From positions 366,193 through 430,192 of the forward strand of contig RDEW01000011.1 of the NCBI GenBank assembly GCA_011109175.1: a DNA stretch of 64,000 bases. Direction: 5' to 3'. This document shows, piece after piece, positions 49,961 to 64,000 of this stretch. Below the pieces are notes generated by a model, which was given only the letters and a program-made list of their open reading frames with translations, was not told the DNA's origin and did no database searches. The stretch comes from Dicyema japonicum. Taxonomy: Eukaryota > Animalia > Dicyemida. The position numbers and the translations under genes were made by a program. The first letter of the stretch is position 1. Every line of letters starts with the position of its first letter.

Positions 49961-50413
49961 TGACCGACTCTGCTCTGATTTGTTATGAAAGGGGAACAGA
50001 TTCAATGTCGATGTCGAACAATGTCTTCACTATCAAGAATCTTCCACTTCGTGAAATGACTTATTATTCTTTGATGTTATGAATCTATACTATTAATTAG
50101 ATACCTTTGATGATGGTTGGAGGTTTCTAAATGTTTATAAAAAGGGTTATTAGTGCTGATAAACGGAGTTAGGTTTATTAGATTCAAATCAGATTCTTAT
50201 CAAAATAGCCAAGGGATTTTGGTGATTTTCAAAACCAAGGATTTCCACCTACTTTGATTTTTTTTATAATTTCTTGTACACTCGAAATTTTTCAAGTGTA
50301 GACATTAAGATCATCTGAGATATCTCTTGAGGAGCTAGATGCGAGATCCTGGAACGTTCCACTTAACAAAATGCCAATAAATCAATTTAAATTAACTAAG
50401 TCAATAACTCTAA

Positions 50414-53207
50414 TTAGCTTTCTTTTTGAGTTTGGTTTTTTCTGGATAATTTGCTTGATAATTTGTGAGCAGTAATTATTTTGTATGCTCTCTGTGGGTT
50501 ATTAAACATTTATTACAAGACTAATAAATTGAATCACTGAACTTCTCCAAAAACCTGATTGTGATTTTCGAATTATTGGGATGAGGGCGTAATACATCCA
50601 AATTTCGGTAATAAAAATGACAACACACAAACCCATTCCACTGTACAACCAAACGAATGTACCCACGTGGTCTTCACTTGATAATTGCAAATTAGCGATC
50701 TTCTTTTTTTGACCACAGTCCGAAAGTATTTCGTATTTGTTAATCAGAGTCTCATAAAATCCTTTCTCGTTATAGTAAATCAGAATATTCTCGATCAGTT
50801 TCTACTTTGATTAAAAAATTCACATTTTTTTCATCGTTTTTTCTAATGGCAATTCCGTGGTGATTGTAACCAAAATATCCGTTCGTTCGGAATAAGCAGT
50901 CTGAAAATATCTGCCCGGCCTTGGTGTATGTCTCGTCAGTCAAATACACGTCAATTTCGTTATTTCTATGTCATTAGCTCATAATGTACTCCATTGCTTT
51001 GAATCCCTCAGAACTTTTAGTGAATAAGTTTTTTGGTTCAATTCTGTTGTACAACTCCGGATTTAAGTCTTTCAAAAGAGCGGAAATCGAAGAATTTTTG
51101 ATAAGCCCAGGCCTGTATTTTAGCAACTGGAGTTTGTTTAGAAAGCTTACTTCTTTGTCATAAATCCCATTAAAGTCAGGCTTCTCTGCTTGATAGGCAA
51201 AAATCCCAGCCAAATTTGCAGTGTATTGAGCAACAAAGATAATACAGCTTGCAGCCCAGCATGATTGAATAAATTTCGTGGACCATGCCTTAGGAATTTT
51301 GATTGGAAAGTTTCTTCCAGTCAGGACGGCTACTGCCATAGTGAATGAAGACCCTTTAATGAAGAATTGACGAGATACCAAGAGTGTATTTCCCTTCGTT
51401 GTCCCTATCAGGGGAATTATACCCATAAGGACTATTCCATTCTACTATCCCCATAACGATTGTCACAATAATCAACATACAAAATATAAGGATCCAGGCT
51501 TCTTTTGAATAAGGCTCGAAAATGACAGTAATTGGTGGGGTTACGGTTACTTTTCGTGTAATAAAAACATAACGAGAAGGGAATAAAGGTCGGATAAAGT
51601 CAACCGCCTTAAATCCCTACCAAAATAAACCATTTTTCTTTCGGGGTGATCGTTAACAAGGCAATCGATAAGTTAGCATTTCCGTTGTGAATCTCTTGAA
51701 TGAGTCCGTTCCATCCGTTTGAAGTAAGTGAACCGTAAATATTGTCTGTTTTGAGATATAATTGAATTCTTAATAACTTAACCTTAAACCTCTTGTTTAA
51801 GTCAACTTCAAGGCTTTCTGAGAATTCTGCAAAGACACCAGTACAGCACATTACTGTGTAATTTGCGGAGTTGATTTTTGTTCCAAAAATAGTCAAGGAA
51901 TATCTCGTTTAACTCTTGATTTGTGGGCGAATTGACTCTAAGACATATTTTTCCATTTTTGCAGCTATCCGGGTCAGTCACCTTAGTAACAGACATGAAT
52001 GGAGCCTCGTTGATGGTCACAGCCCTCAAAGCTTTCCAAACTTTCATTAAGTACCCATTAAGTATGTTGTCAATATTTATTTTACTGTTGCTGGCATAAC
52101 CATTGATAGTCCCAATATCAATCCAATTTAGCAGAGAATCACTACAGAACCGAACAATCCCTTTCTTGTAGGCGATATTCCCATTAATATCGAGTTGGAT
52201 TGTGATTTTGTCAAATTTATAACTCGTAGTCGCACTTTGCGTCCCCCGAGCCCAGGAGTATGGGTACGAACTGTTAGTCAATTTCCACTCCAGGTAATTT
52301 TGTTTAAAAATGTGGCTTAGAAACAGCGATAGTCTGAAAATCTCTGTGATGTTGGTTGTATCACTTAATTTCTCAATACCGATGATGGGGTGATAGCAGT
52401 CGATCTTCTGGAGAGGCTCCCCGATGTATAGTAAAATCGTGTTGTCTGTAAGAAATCCTTTAGTTTTCAGATAACAAACCAGGTCGCTTATTTTCAAAAG
52501 ATCTAATTGGAGGATGAACATAAAGTTGATTGAATTCTTGAGATATCGAATGAGGATATCATTCCGGATTGACAAAATGCCTTTTGATTCTGATACTCGT
52601 ATGATACTTACAGTTAACCCACGTGCTTTAGCTTCGTAGAATATTTGAGTTCCGTAATCGTTGTTATAAGCATTATCCATAAGGAACATTATTGGACTGT
52701 ACTTTGGATTCATTGCTATCATAGTCACTATCGTCTCAATGTCTGTCGATATTTGGTTGTTTATTTTGGTTACAGACACGTCCTTAATTTAAATATGTGA
52801 ATTACAGGAGGGAATGGAAAATCAACTTTGTCAGTCGTGTAGGAGATAAGGTGGATCCCAAAATAGTGAGTCATTGTCGAAACAACCTGCATTAACTTAC
52901 TTGGCCCAATAATGCTTCCGGTTATAAAGTCCTGATTTTTATTTAAGTTTCCAAAATAAGTGTTTAAGAATGGTAGAACTTCAAGGTAAGAATTATTGTA
53001 AGCAATCTCGACTGAATTTGTGATACAATTAAAGGAACTCGTGTTCAGTGCTACAAGAAGAAGAGGTTGAGCAATAGACTTTGTGACAATTGCCACGTTG
53101 GATGGTTTGATTCCACTTCCCTTTATAGAACAGTTGGACGTTTGAATTAAATAAATTGAATTGAATGAACACAACCGTACAAAAATACCTAACACAAATA
53201 TTAGCAT
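50414..53207 (-). CDS. GRIN3: NMDA-type ionotropic glutamate receptor subunit, GluN3-like
   Basis: ATD; LRAVTINEAPF; CCTG; GWNGLI; EWNSPYG; pore AVLTGRNFPIKIPKAWSTKF ~ GluN3A LLFGRTVAIKPPKCWTGRF; QYTANLA; M4 ...EIWMYYALIPIIRK ~ EHIVYRLLLPRIK. Introns of about 22-26 nt; stop at 50414-50416. Confidence 0.85.
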
Positions 53208-57629: not shown

Positions 57630-60600
57630 CAGGGGTTCCCAAACTTATTCAGGTCATCGCCCCCTTTAACAAACTTTTAAAAAATATCGCCCACCAAGAA
57701 AACCTATATGGTAACGAGTTGGAAATAAAAAAATTAATAATTAATATGAACACTTATGTTGCAAAAAGTTAGACACAAGTTCAATTTTTGGGTTCATGTT
57801 TGTAAGCCTAATTCGTAGATCTCCTCTTTCAACAATGTCCAAGCGGTTTTTCCTTTTGGTAATTAGCTGTCTCAACCAGCAAGAAGTGGAAAGCAATAAA
57901 AAACAATTTTTATTTTTCCATAACATAGGATATTTTTCAGGAATATCTTTTTGTAACCAAAAATCTTGATACGACCGGTGTTTAAAAGTGGGTTTAATTT
58001 CAAAATCGTTTTTTAACATAATTAGTTCCTCTTGACAACAAGATTTAGCGTCATCTAATTCTGAAAGGGGTCTACTACCCAATCTGGAACTTTGAGTTCG
58101 CATAAATCTTTGAAACGTTTCTTCATATCTTGTTCAAGAGTGATCAAATGTTCAATATAAATTTCGAAATCATCTTCAGAAAGGAAGCATTTAAGACCGT
58201 TGAGACGTGGAAATGAATTAATTCTTTCCTGCCAATATTCCTACAAAATAAAGGTAGTTTCAAAATAAGAGCAGAAATAAGTGACTTTGCTTAAATTAAT
58301 TTAAAAAATAAAACCTTGATTAAATTAATATCAGCAAATTGTAATTTCACATTAAGTTCATTAAATTTAGCAAAAATCCAGGCTCCGTTGATTTTTTTGT
58401 TCCCCTGAAATTTTTGGAAAAACGTCAGCGGCTGGTTGGAATTATTTTGATGAACATATATTTTAATAAAATATAAGAACCCTTCGTAAATGCTGACTTA
58501 ATCTAGAAGGCTTCATAGCCTCGTTAGCAAATGACTTTGAGCACAATAAACAGAAAGGTCTTCTTCCATCACTAGGAGATTGTTGAATAATACAAATACA
58601 CCGCAAATCACGCTAGTGTCAATTTAAAATTACAGGTTCACAATACTGAAATTCTATTATATTAATTATTATTATCAGCACTGCCGAGAACACATAAAAA
58701 AACAAAAGTCAATTAAGGTTCCCTTGTGCCGCGCCGGCCACCCTTTGCACCAATCGCATCCAAAGGCCTCTCCGTTTCGCAAGATCTCTTAGTTCATCGA
58801 GGTCATCCATTGTTTTCAACTCCCTGCCTATGGCTTTTAGGTCCTTATTTAGCGTGATAGGTAAGGTTATTCTAGGCCTTCCTCGGACTGATTTTGTTTT
58901 TTCCATGAAATATTCATCTATTACGTGATTTGCCGGTACATCCAGGTGACCGAACAGTCTCCATCTCGATCTTCTGATTTCCATGGATAATGGTTCTGTT
59001 TTGCTCAACTTATATAATTGTTCGTTTTTGATCTTCATTTTGTAGTGAATATTAAGTGCCTTCCGAAGCATACTGCGGTCGAAACTGTCAATAGACTCCA
59101 TTGCCCGTTTAGACAAACCCCATGTCCCACAGTTATATATTAGGATGGGCACAACAAAGTATTTGTATATCATAAGCTTTATTTTTCCACAAGGTCTTCT
59201 TCCCGAACTCCATATTTTAGATAGGCTTCTGAAAGCACCAGATGCAAGGATTTTCCGTCGAGCTACATCTTCCATGTCTCCCAAGAGCGATCCGACCTTC
59301 TTATGTCTTCTCCACGTCTCGTCGGATATCCTCTCTGCACGGCTGAATGATGTAAATTCCGTTTTGTCAGTGTTTATCTTCAAGAACCATTTTTGGAAAA
59401 TGTTAGGAAGATGTTCGTTTATGTATTTGAGAAATTCAGAATCATCCGATACAAAGTCCAGATCGTCTGCGTAAATCAACTCATAATATTGTCCTTTAAT
59501 GGATAATCTAAAATCCCTCAGTGCAGCCTCAAGATAAATAATAAATAGAATAGGAGACAACGAATCCCCTTGTGGAACTCCCCGAGTGGTTTTAAAAAAA
59601 TTGGAAGCTTTATTGAGTATGATGGTGATTATTTCACCCAATTCAGTGGGTCCACATTTTATTAACTCTGCAGGTATATTATCAGGACCAGCCGCTTTCC
59701 TGTAGTTTAGTTTTCCTATTGCCTTGATAGTTTCCGCGATAATAATGGGGCAGTTAAGAGGAGCCGTTGATGTTATTGGAGATTTGTTTTCAATTTCTTG
59801 ATTGTTAAAGATGTCATAGTAGTGTGAAGAGACTATGTTCGCCTTTTCAATAACATTCAATACTGATCGTCCATGTTGGTCGTAAATAACAATATTCCCT
59901 GGTCGTTTCTTTTTGCTAATAATCCGAATGGCTTTGAACATTTTGGATCCGTTCTTATATTTCTTGATTTCATCGACCTGTTCCTCCACTTCCTTTTTTA
60001 CTTGATATTTTTGAAGTTTTTTGATTTTTGTTAAAATTGAGTTACGAACTATCCTTAGCTTTTTTTTAGACTCGGTATATTTGAATTATTAATTCTAATC
60101 CTCAAATTCTTTTGTTCTGAAGATAAGTATGATATTTCTTCGTTGTTATATTAGAATTTGTTTTTGTGAGTAGTCCCCAAAACCAACGACGCGGTATTCT
60201 TCATTGCAACTCCAACGTCATTCCACAAATCCTGTGCACTATTGTTTGTATTCATCTTGCTTAATTCCTTTCTGAGTTTTTCGTCATACTCTTTATCTTT
60301 ATTTCATTGCTTATTAGAGTTTCTGTATCCAATCTTTCGAATTCCGTTTTTCCATATCTTCCAGATTTGTACAAACTTCCCAGAGATAACCGAGTGATCA
60401 CCAATTTGTGATCACTTGATGTTTCAAGCCCATCGTATGATCTCGAGTTTCGTATTAGGTTTTTGTTCCTTCTTCTGCACAAGATATAATCAATTTGATT
60501 ATATATTTTAATCAAGTTGCCATTTTTGTCCTTTCGTGAACCAGTCCAGGTAGTTTTATGTCTTGCTGGGTGTTCAAAAGCAGTGTTGTAGGATTCGCAG

Positions 60601-61284
60601 AATTGAACCAATGAGACACCAGAGGAATTTCGACGATTCCGAGCATGTGATCCAATACAAGTCTCCCCATTCCGTACTTTACCAACTCTGGCATTCCAGT
60701 CTCCATCAATAAACGTCAGATATGACGACGAAAGTGAGTCATATGTCCCTGTCAAACATGAGTAAAACGCACCAAGTTCTTCAGGATTGGCATCAGCCGG
60801 ACAGCGGTCGGAGCATAAACATTGATGATAGAAATAACAGAGTTGGGCTTTGTTCCAAACTTCAGTTGCATGACTGCAATACGATCCGAGACAGCCCATA
60901 CGCGTGTCACACGGTCGTAAAGATCCCTGTGAACCGCAAATCCAAGACCATAATGTCGGCAGTCAAGTCCAAAGTGATCATGTAGTAATCATCCAATTTC
61001 GTAATAAATATGCTGTAATCTTTGTCTCTTGAATGCAGCAAATACTGACACCATGGATAGATAAATCACGTGCGAGTTGATGTTTTTTGGTGATGAACTT
61101 CAAGCCTCGAGTGTTGAAAATACCAAGAGAGAATGGGCAACGGGTAATTAATATTAATTAGATGATTGATATTAATTTTAAGAATAATTTATTATTGCCC
61201 CCTTGAAATTAAAATCGCCCCCCGCCCCCTTTGAATTTCTTATCTCCCCCAAGGGGGCGATATCGCTCACTTTGGAAAACCCTG
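57630..61284 (-). mobile_element. hAT (Buster-type) non-autonomous DNA transposon, about 1.16 kb without the nested LINE
   Basis: Exact 8-bp TSD GCCTAGAC (57622-57629 / 61285-61292) with central TA. TIRs CAGGGGTTCCCAAAC / CAGGG-TTTTCCAAAG. C-terminal transposase FWL..KYP.LW...ITK.KNRLDIVERGDLR.RLT. Confidence 0.92.
58669..61150 (-). mobile_element. RTE-clade LINE nested in the hAT element
   Basis: 10-bp direct repeat ATATTAATTA (58659-58668 / 61151-61160). APE (FNTRGL, QETK, DWNARVG, YNQIDYI, SDHKLV) and RT (GVPQGDSLSP, YADDL). The middle of the RT is deleted. Short TAA tail. Confidence 0.93.
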
Positions 61285-61392
61285 GCCTAGACGCATCATT
61301 GGACCGTGATATAATAAAGGTGGCAATTCTGAATGGAAAGATCCGTGAATGAAACCATGATTATTATTAAAACAATTATTATGTTAGTGTTA

Positions 61393-64000
61393 TTAGGTGG
61401 GAACGACTGATGACTTTTTTTTCTTGAGATATTTCCGATTAAATTTGTTGAAGCTTCTTTTAACACTTTTTTTAACGGTCTCTTTATTTCTGCTGTAAAT
61501 ATTTTCCAGAATATTAACTATAAATCCAACAATTATTCCAATAATGGCGCTCAAGAATACGCCTTAATAATATCAGCAAAAACCTGCAATCTGATTAAAA
61601 TCTCCGTTTTTTTCTTTAAATTGAATCGAACAGTTGTTTTCTGAAAACCTCAAGTGCCACTTTATTTCGAGTTGCTTCATTTGGGTTTCTAAGCATAATT
61701 GCAAATGACTACTTATGACATTCTTCAATAATAAATCGAAGGAAGATTTGTAAGAACTATTTTTGACAAAAGCGACTGCCAGATTGTGCTCGGCGAAATT
61801 AAATTTCAGTTGGTTGAACCTGCACTCTTTGTAGCTTTCATAAACGAGGCGTTCCTTTGGCAAAATAAGTCCATCGATTTGTCTATGTGAATGACAACCC
61901 ATACTTGTTTATTAATGCCTTTATTGCATCTTCTGTGGAGTTGTAGGTCCGTTTTAGCTTATAGAGGATTTCAAAATATTTTCTTTCCGATCGGAGTGAA
62001 TCAATAATAAAAGGGTCGTTCAAACTCCCAAAAATTAATCCCTGTAATAAAATTCCGTCAAATGAACTTGTTTTCCTGATTTTGAAATTTGTAAAAATTC
62101 TGAATGTTGAGTGACGAGAAATCCGGCTAACTGAGCGGTGTAGGAAGCCGAAATTATCATAGTCGCAAATGCCCAAACCAAACTCAATGTCTTGGCTGAA
62201 AAACTTCGAGGGATTCCTATTTGTATCAAATACTAAAGAACCTTCTCCAATAGCAGAGTTTACACCGACACTCAAAGTGAACCAAAATCCACTCGAAAGG
62301 TTCAGAGCATCCTTAACATGAGTTTCCTCAGATTCAAAAGAACCGAAAGGAGAAATTCTATCGAAGATATAAAATACCAGAGCAGTTGATAATATTGAAA
62401 AAATAATAAGCATCCAAAGGTTGAAGGAAAAGGGGTGTAAAAAGTTTGTAAAATCAATATTGGTAATTTCCTACAAAATTGATTGTGGTGTACCTTATTT
62501 TGTATTAGCACACTCTCTTGACTCCGAAATGAAATGCTATATGACACAAATTTTGCACGTTCTGCTGTGACGTACAAAGGAGCCAGAATAATATCTCTTT
62601 TCCCATAAATGAGGTCCCCTATCAACCCATTCCAGTATTTGAAGACAGAATTATTGTGCTTTGAATATTACAAAGTAATCACGTTTTTGTACGATCCGCC
62701 AACACCAGTATCAAGAATTAGTCTCATTGGAATCTTGACTTGGTTTTTGTAAAGTATTAAAATATCAATTAAAAATCCATAACAGCAGTAAAATACATTG
62801 GTTTCTCCCATAAAAATACATGTTACTTGCAGCAGCATCATAATGGACACACTCCATCTCCTGGGATGTACATTCTGTGTCTCTCATCCTCTTCATTGTG
62901 TACGGGATTATTTCAGGGGATGAAACCTTAGTCAGAGATACAACTACTCTAAGAATTTTATGTTTCTTTATTCCTGCGTTCGAACACGTGGTACAATTAA
63001 GTATTGATTCTGTGATTCCAGGTAGTAGATTAATATTCACATACATTTGGCTCTTTCAATTTATAGTTTCAGATACTGTACTAACTGCTGTCCCCACAAT
63101 TTCTATGCTGCTATTTTGTTTATTTACCAAAAAGTAGTTAAATGAAGTGCGATATCCGATGTCTGAAAACATAATTCTCCCGGAATATCCTACACTGTAG
63201 CTTACGATCATAAATCTGTACTACAAGCCAATAATACCTTACTAAAATTGATTCAACGCTGGAATAGCAGTGATCATATCTCGGATAGACCTTGTTAATT
63301 ATTTTCGAATGGTTGAATGCATATCTCGCATATGTAATGGCATCCTTGATGTATGCAAGCTCGTCAGTAACTTTTAGTTTGAACGAAAATGTTCCATTGG
63401 GAGTTTCCTTCAGATTTATCAAGGATTCATGCAGAAGCCAAATGTAAGAATCCAGCAAATTGAATTTTTTAGCCAAATCGAATATTATTGGAGCCACTTC
63501 AGGTCTGAGACATAAACAGGGGAGTTACTTGAAAAATCCAATAATCACGCCAGCAGAGATTGATGACATTTGAGTAATTATTTGGTCCATTTGTGTCATC
63601 CCTAATCTAATTACAATATCCTGATCAATCTGAAATTAGCATAAAATTTACTTCAACTTTCTTACGTTTCAACAATTTCACCATTTCAAGGCTCATACTG
63701 TCCCCACTGTTGATGAATGCTACTCTCGTCCACTTTAGCTTCATGATTAGATTCGTCATCAAATTTATCTCCTTTTCTACTGAGGAATACATGTGGAGTC
63801 GGTGAATGTATTTCTTAGTAAATAGGATATTATACATTAAAATACAAGCCGGAATTAATGCTGTAATAAGAACCTATGGAGACTGACGGAATAGACATAG
63901 ACGACAGTAAAATGTTGGTATAAAATTGTTGCGATTTATGATAACTCACAATTAGCAAGTTTGGTTTCACTTCTCGGATGGTTTGGCACATTTGTTGTAA
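61393..64000 (-). CDS. GRIN1: NMDA-type receptor subunit, GluN1-like (5' end beyond the window)
   Basis: [11 protein letters not shown]...APL...[18 protein letters not shown]|IPRSFSAK (GluN1 LNSGIGEGAPRSFSAR), [12 protein letters not shown]4 DFNQIAG|VFL...GIIVG; micro-introns; stop at 61393-61395. Confidence 0.9.

Follow-up and report, generated by a model that had tools for sequence, protein, structure and literature searches.

A stretch of 64,000 nucleotides from the genome of the dicyemid Dicyema japonicum (contig RDEW01000011.1, positions 366,193 to 430,192; hereafter the window) carries at its end, on the minus strand, a gene for a GluN1-like ionotropic glutamate receptor (iGluR) subunit, designated C13b, whose glycine/D-serine pocket has been rebuilt. 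Compared with the GluN1 contact set F484, P516, T518, R523, S688, W731 and D732 (rat GluN1 numbering, obtained by adding 2 to positions in the bird reference P0116), five of the seven residues are replaced, namely F484G, T518Y, S688F, W731L and D732P, which leaves P516 and R523 of the original set. Canonical binding of glycine or D-serine is no longer possible in this pocket: it offers neither the usual contacts to the ligand's amino group, made by D732 and by the hydroxyl of T518, nor the aromatic lid (F484), and it is probably no longer a co-agonist site for these ligands. We give an even chance, with the directly visible part counted in, to the reading that C13b provides an agonist-independent GluN1-type subunit, a silent clamshell in heterotetrameric channels.

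The pocket residues were placed by several alignments. HMMER sets APLYVTAER of C13b opposite APLTINNER of GluN1, which keeps P516 and R523 and replaces T518 by tyrosine. In the numbering of C13b itself, the residues equivalent to 518, 523 and 688 are Y480, R485 and F643. In the preceding exon, TGVGGSY aligns with DGKFGTQ of GluN1 and with KTYGTF of the paralogue C345, which makes residue 484 a glycine. The second half of S2 aligns unambiguously, anchored by a Y-x-S...A-I motif and by the cysteines C744 and C798, and yields W731L and D732P. For the first half of S2, profile-profile comparison by hhalign places the phenylalanine of C13b at S688 with a probability of 99.6-99.9 %. The corresponding segment of a further paralogue, C113, aligns to GluN1 free of gaps, and the phenylalanines of C13b, C345 and C113 all fall into the S688 column. 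S687P and V689I hold alongside S688F in both the three-paralogue alignment and hhalign. A plain MAFFT alignment of all references proposed a serine at 688 together with a deleted helix; it was rejected, as the three-paralogue alignment and hhalign disagree with it.

These positions vary little elsewhere. Our references comprise 12 GluN1 and three AKDF proteins. Every one that covers the respective columns has W731 and R523, and 732 is either D or E. Within the 12 GluN1 proteins, position 484 is F or Y (V in one), 518 is T or S, 688 is mostly S or A, 731 is W and 732 is D or E. A preliminary description of this DNA had already claimed T518Y, S688F, W731L and D732P along with the retention of R523; all of these are present in the exons, and the alignment now rests on HMMER, hhalign and the paralogues.

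The channel part combines conserved and altered elements. The N-site asparagine N616 and the serine that follows it are retained (VNSAIGEG) and are succeeded by IPRSFSAK, which constitutes the GluN1 pore signature. The gate reads SYTAQLAGF as compared with SYTANLAAF, i.e. N650Q at the fifth residue of the motif and A653G at the eighth, the "Lurcher" position. SYTANLAA is found in 12 of 12 reference GluN1 proteins, and the fifth residue belongs to the three best conserved ones of the motif (PMC6307864). Moreover, C13b lacks DRPEER, and its M3-S2 linker is six to seven residues shorter than those of GluN1 and C113; the invariant SYTANLAAF gate with DRPEER, a hallmark of GluN1, is absent from this protein. 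The SYTAQLA gate and the kept N-site had been noticed before and are borne out by the codons, to which A653G, F484G and the linker deletion are added here.

According to our gene model, C13b consists of 13 exons and 12 introns and forms a single open frame of 833 codons, encoding 833 amino acids. The ATG lies at window-equivalent position 64171, i.e. 171 nt past the window end (the upstream flank is L001, whose coordinates plus 59899 give window coordinates), and the stop codon occupies 61395-61393. Exon junctions were picked by homology to GluN1 and to C345, and all twelve introns are GT..AG micro-introns of 21-26 nt. The published D. japonicum genome comprises 67.5 Mb in 377 scaffolds, with a GC content of 36.7 % and a mean intron length of 38 bp (PMC6736024); the 2.5 kb frame of C13b is intact in this 36 % GC genome. 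No part of the window resembles human sequence. The predicted protein runs from a hydrophobic N-terminus through the amino-terminal domain (ATD), S1, M1, M2, M3, S2 and M4 to a short basic tail. Coding sequence accounts for 2,502 nt of the 2,779 nt gene. Since only the remaining 277 nt are non-coding, no alternative exon that restores T, S or D at the pocket positions fits, which largely removes the concern about an alternative splice form raised in the preliminary description. The codons of the key motifs all lie mid-exon on the minus strand in three-frame translation. Four sequencing runs of one study are DNA contigs; they contain 92-95 % of the words, introns included, and show no joints.

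Introns 9 and 10 together measure 51 nt and therefore leave an unspliced frame of 195 codons open at 61886-62470 of the minus strand, in which M3 is read out of frame. Gene callers based on open reading frames or on minimum introns would mis-model C13b and deliver a product without M3. We rejected the minimum-intron path through the gene, which runs through these two introns and loses M3.

The assignment to GluN1 was addressed exon by exon. Pfam detects PF10613 on the S1 exon (9.4e-9), and both the M1 and the M3 exon match PF00060 (1.6e-9 for the M3 exon, exon 10). When compared by phmmer with all chains in PDB, the S1 exon finds GluN1 first (1.3e-9), the M1-M2 exon matches GluN1 at 4e-14 with GluA2 as first non-GluN1 chain at 1e-3, and the M3 exon matches GluN1 at 3e-8 and GluA2 at 1e-4. 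For the membrane exons, GluN1 is thus 25-30 bits ahead of the next family. The S2 exons individually gave no match by Pfam or by phmmer against PDB and needed profile methods. A GluN1 hidden Markov model (HMM) produces colinear matches from the ATD to M4, with the ATD part covering HMM positions 6-356. The general hallmarks of iGluRs are present as well: a bilobed S1/S2 domain split by the channel (PF10613 on S1; 99.9 % hhalign probability for S2), the segments M1, M2 loop, M3 and M4, and a gate that agrees with SYTANLAAF at 7 of 9 residues.

When 1.84 billion representatives were searched exhaustively by phmmer, the M1-M2 exon had 109 matches. All matches of at least 450 amino acids for which the M2-M3 stretch was shown carry the GluN1 signature (NSGIGEG.PRSFSA ... 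SYTANLAAFLVLDRP), except for three of the AKDF type. Named GluN1 proteins among the matches come from a bird, a mite, a jellyfish, an acoel, Lingula and Schistosoma. The best identity for this exon was ~55 %, and no close orthologue was found in that library.

A maximum-likelihood tree (LG+C20, 21 rows) groups C13b with C345 and C113 (94/96) inside the GluN1 clade (99/99), which leaves out the AKDF references as well as the other iGluR loci of this genome. The references of the tree are GluN1 and three AKDF proteins, and dicyemid GluN2/3-like loci stand in for true GluN2 and GluN3; further caveats are very long branches and odd composition. Long-branch attraction should draw all dicyemid sequences together, and the tree does not show that. 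Taken together, exon-wise PDB matches, Pfam, the exhaustive search with the M1-M2 exon, the HMM and the tree corroborate the earlier assignment as GluN1-like and place the protein inside rather than outside of the clade: C13b is of the GluN1 type.

To place C13b in its genomic context, the complete assembly (67,542,437 bases, 377 contigs) was searched. Searches with Pfam families detected seven iGluR loci, namely C13b, C345, C113, C13a, two on C323 and one on C333, and within the reach of these searches, all iGluRs of the genome are of the N-methyl-D-aspartate (NMDA) type. When Lingula GluN1 was compared with the whole genome, C13b was the best match (6e-18), followed by C113 and C345. A canonical GluN1 was found in the assembly neither by the Pfam-family searches nor with the Lingula protein; what the genome holds besides C13b are two further remodelled GluN1-like loci. 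The preliminary description had pointed out that GluN1 is normally the obligatory co-agonist subunit. Here it has to be amended: C13b is not the single obligatory GluN1 of the animal but belongs to a set of three GluN1-like paralogues specific to this lineage.

C345 is the sister of C13b (100/100 in the tree), with an overall identity of ~41-43 % (59 % in S1, 44 % in S2, 33 % in M1-M2 and 51 % in M3). The two share the intron positions, the SYTAQLA gate, the short linker, Y518 and F688, and they differ in that C345 keeps Y484 and an acidic residue, E, at 732. C113, which has the longest branch of the three in the tree (2.58), retains SYTANLA and a full-length linker and carries G516, H518, F688 and D731-L732. 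S688F and the losses of T518 and W731 are common to all three copies, and therefore they predate the triplication, which makes the remodelling an old trait of the family as a whole; R523 is kept in 3/3. GluN1-like exons and intron positions are likewise common to the three. G484 and P732 are found only in C13b. By these comparisons, C13b is the most derived of the three, and none of them possesses a canonical glycine site.

Several observations bear on the question whether C13b is a maintained gene. In the DNA contigs, the gene shows eight allelic differences. Six of them alter a third codon position without changing the amino acid, K126Q in the ATD is the only non-synonymous one, and the last is located in intron 2. 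At least six synonymous changes out of seven have a probability of ~0.001 if 25 % synonymous changes are expected, and the 6:1 excess therefore supports purifying selection as well as the chosen reading frames. Between C13b and C345, the proportion of non-synonymous differences (pN) is 0.30-0.36 and that of synonymous differences (pS) 0.76-0.87; as pS is saturated, dN/dS tells no more than that pN is far below pS. Between the two paralogues, conservation of the S1 and S2 exons is no lower than that of the M1-M2 exon, and the twelve micro-intron positions of C13b are common to C345. C13b thus looks functional, is under purifying selection and is not decaying: a long-dead copy is excluded, and very recent silencing is compatible with the data.

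Candidate partner subunits are encoded in the same genome. C13a, which neighbours C13b, has GluN3A as the best match of its M2-M3-S2 exon (8e-11, versus 4e-7 for GluN2B) and is located outside the GluN1 clade in the tree. In window positions 51600-51660 (minus strand), its S1 exon reads TITPKEK and then runs to a stop, and no GT-AG intron of at least 18 nt links this exon in frame to the AVDFIRPLF exon. Either the arginine of the C13a binding site is K or E, or there is an assembly error at this position. The loci on C323 and C333 are GluN2/3-like and keep T and R of the LTISSER type. In case of C323, M3 matches GluN2B and S1 matches GluN3B/GluD2, with T and R retained in an LTISSER motif. The two C323 copies are near-identical, with the same S1 exon translation and a gate reading AYYTAFLAA; the M3 match of the plus-strand copy is weaker or partial.

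How could such a subunit work? C13b keeps the complete iGluR machine, i.e. signal peptide, ATD, the S1/S2 clamshell with its C744-C798 disulfide, M1, M2 with the N-site, M3 and M4, built around an altered pocket. In this pocket the lid is gone (F484G), the hydroxyl contacts are exchanged for bulky aromatic residues (T518Y in lobe 1, S688F in lobe 2), the tryptophan that narrows the pocket is missing (W731L) and the acid that holds the amino group is replaced by proline (D732P), while the carboxylate-binding R523 and P516 remain. As an agonist-independent subunit, C13b would most likely pair with GluN2/GluN3-like subunits, one of which is encoded ~10 kb away, and ligand gating would be left to these partners. 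N650Q, A653G and the short linker would retune the coupling of the silent clamshell to the gate and might make up for its failure to close on a ligand.

An engineered precedent exists: GluN1 carrying F484A and T518L does not bind glycine, still assembles with GluN3A and shows no glycine-induced desensitisation, the receptor being gated through the partner subunit (PMC10125900). C13b may be the natural counterpart of this combination. In engineered glycine-blind GluN1 (F484A+T518L or F484H+R523K), residues are exchanged of which 484 and 518 are also replaced in C13b, and a GluN3-like gene adjoins C13b. In contrast to the engineered proteins, C13b is natural and has three further pocket changes in addition to the gate and linker changes.

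Several points weigh against the agonist-independent subunit. Expression and the 12 splice junctions have no RNA support; the tree contains no true GluN2 or GluN3 references, and its dicyemid branches are very long. For the putative partner C13a, the arginine column reads K/E and the junction of the S1 exon after TITPKEK has no solution. Finally, the retention of R523 in all three paralogues and the conservation of Y518 and F688 between C13b and C345, identical despite the low overall identity of these proteins, argue that the pocket may still be in use, and a switch of ligand would fit these residues better.

Such a switch, which we consider possible although somewhat unlikely, would mean that the clamshell closes on a small molecule other than an alpha-amino acid: R523 would anchor a carboxylate, Y518, F688 and L731 would form a hydrophobic or aromatic pocket, and an anchor for an amine would be missing. 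C13b might then sense an organic acid of the host in the renal fluid of the cephalopod, similar to acid-sensing insect ionotropic receptors (IRs), which keep the arginine and have lost T and D/E. Purifying selection on C13b and the conservation of the exons for the ligand-binding domain (LBD) relative to M1-M2 agree with this alternative, as does the absence of a nervous system reported for dicyemids (PMC2222250), which makes a non-synaptic sensory role plausible. However, no ligand can be deduced from the sequence, the retained arginine could be structural, and F484G drops an aromatic lid that is retained in almost every iGluR that binds a ligand and that C345 preserves as Y. P732 and the differences from C345 at 484, 687, 689, 731 and 732 resemble relaxation more than tuning.

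We regard it as improbable that C13b is a recently silenced or unexpressed duplicate drifting towards a pseudogene, with pocket changes that merely reflect lost constraint. The lack of RNA support and the pocket losses that C13b has in excess of its sister C345 (G484, P732) would suit this explanation, and so would the very fast evolution that a Dicyema sp. transcriptome study ascribes to dicyemid proteins (PMC6543705). However, all 833 codons form an unbroken frame across 12 correct GT-AG micro-introns, the allelic differences are predominantly synonymous, and conservation extends to the cysteines, the N-site, PRSFSA and M3. An artefact of modelling or alignment, in which the true exons or frames restore T, S or D or the protein is not of the GluN1 type, is largely refuted and has next to no probability left: the serine that plain MAFFT set at 688 and the minimum-intron path without M3 are opposed by key codons located inside exons, by the lack of room for another exon, by a single matching frame for every HMM region, by the agreement of hhalign and the three-paralogue alignment on S688F, and by synonymous polymorphisms that all fall on third positions of the modelled frames.

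Few subunits of neurotransmitter receptors are as conserved as GluN1: across all our references, which range from jellyfish to birds, its glycine contacts and SYTANLAAF gate hardly vary. C13b resembles GluN1 of bilaterians and cnidarians in domain order, in the best matches of its exons, in N-S-x-I-G-E-G-x-P-R-S-F-S-A, and in P516, R523 and the C744/C798 pair. It differs in the five pocket changes, the gate, the loss of DRPEER, the short linker, the triplication of the gene and its occurrence in an animal without neurons. By descent C13b belongs to the GluN1 clade, but it fails the functional hallmarks of the class, i.e. the contact set and the gate with DRPEER. The C13b family could serve as a natural experiment on the role of GluN1 without co-agonist binding, for which so far only engineered GluN1/GluN3 mutants have been available.

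A comparison with IRs is instructive. Benton and colleagues in 2009, and later authors, reportedly described IRs as proteins of the iGluR fold that have lost parts of the R/T/D triad and act as non-synaptic chemosensors, often keeping the arginine for carboxylic acids. Protostome IRs descend from non-NMDA receptors (AKDF/kainate), and an ATD is missing from most tuning IRs. C13b, in contrast, has an ATD and groups with GluN1 and not with AKDF, so that a functional parallel is possible, and membership is not. Along these lines one may speculate, with a low estimate of our own, about a non-synaptic sensor in this nerveless parasite of ~30 cells: the glycine-blind GluN1 paralogue and the adjacent GluN3-like subunit would together give a channel that does not desensitise and opens in response to glycine or a host metabolite, and the three GluN1-like copies would be fixed or carboxylate-tuned co-subunits. 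If true, C13b would be the first natural GluN1 to abandon co-agonist binding, and would mark a route from GluN1 to an IR-like chemoreceptor independent of insect IRs, so that iGluRs would possibly have been recruited twice for chemosensation of the IR kind.

In the literature we found no earlier report of a GluN1 whose glycine site has been taken apart. The main text of the D. japonicum genome paper contains no mention of glutamate, NMDA, neurotransmitter or ion channel (PMC6736024), and a large survey of metazoan iGluRs leaves dicyemids and mesozoa unmentioned (PMC6307864). For dicyemid iGluRs, published surveys give no more than a count, namely two Lig_chan proteins, identified by Pfam domain, in a Dicyema sp. 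transcriptome (PMC6543705). The seven NMDA-type genes provide a concrete set for asking which role glutamate- or glycine-type signalling has in dicyemids. Coordinates of C13b, its paralogues and the candidate partners are compiled in Table 1.

Table 1. Location of C13b, its exons and key codons, and of further iGluR loci. Positions are window coordinates unless a contig is given.
Feature	Position	Strand	Remarks
C13b, whole gene	61393..64000 (within window)	-	colinear GluN1 HMM matches from ATD to M4 in one open frame
Exon 7, early S1, CC motif of loop 1	62683..62804	-	F484 to G, codon 62700-62698 (TGVGGSY versus KTYGTF in C345), from alignments
Exon 8, S1 core (lobe D1)	62494..62658	-	APLYVTAER at 62583-62557; PF10613 and PDB GluN1 matches
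Exon 8, codons	62574-62572; 62559-62557	-	T518 to Y; R523 kept; P516 also kept
Exon 9, pre-M1, M1 and M2 pore loop	62242..62470	-	N616 in VNSAIGEG, codon 62260-62258; PDB GluN1 match
Micro-intron 9	62217..62241	-	25 nt, GT..AG
Exon 10, IPRSFSAK, M3 and shortened M3-S2 linker	62068..62216	-	PF00060 and PDB GluN1 matches
Exon 10, codons in SYTAQLAGF	62133-62131; 62124-62122	-	N650 to Q; A653 to G
Micro-intron 10	62042-62067	-	26 nt
Exon 11, first half of S2	61905..62041	-	SLNDPFII; S687 to P, S688 to F, V689 to I at 62014-62006 (F codon 62011-62009), by hhalign
Exon 12, second half of S2	61584..61882	-	LILPKERL; W731 to L 61863-61861; D732 to P 61860-61858
Exon 12, cysteines kept	61824-61822; 61632-61630	-	C744; C798; 44 % identity to C345 over 104 aa
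Exon 13, M4, short lysine-rich C-tail and stop	61393..61562	-	GluN1 HMM positions 797-839; hydrophobic peak at residue 778
C13a, GluN3-like iGluR	50400..52800	-	~10 kb downstream of C13b on the same strand; candidate partner
C345	G000:C345:~1413.7-1416.5 kb		GluN1-like paralogue
C113	G000:C113:~521.6-524.5 kb (L019 4670-7450)	-	GluN1-like paralogue
C323, first copy	~474.2-474.9 kb (L021)	-	inverted relative to the other copy, ~112 kb apart
C323, second copy	~362.6-363.3 kb (L022)	+	see first copy

Both flanks of C13b (L001 4400-5600 upstream and window positions 60500-61300 downstream) contain long stop-free stretches without similarity to iGluRs. They may be remnants of repeats or transposons, and the downstream flank includes a G/C-rich oddity at window positions 61215-61265.

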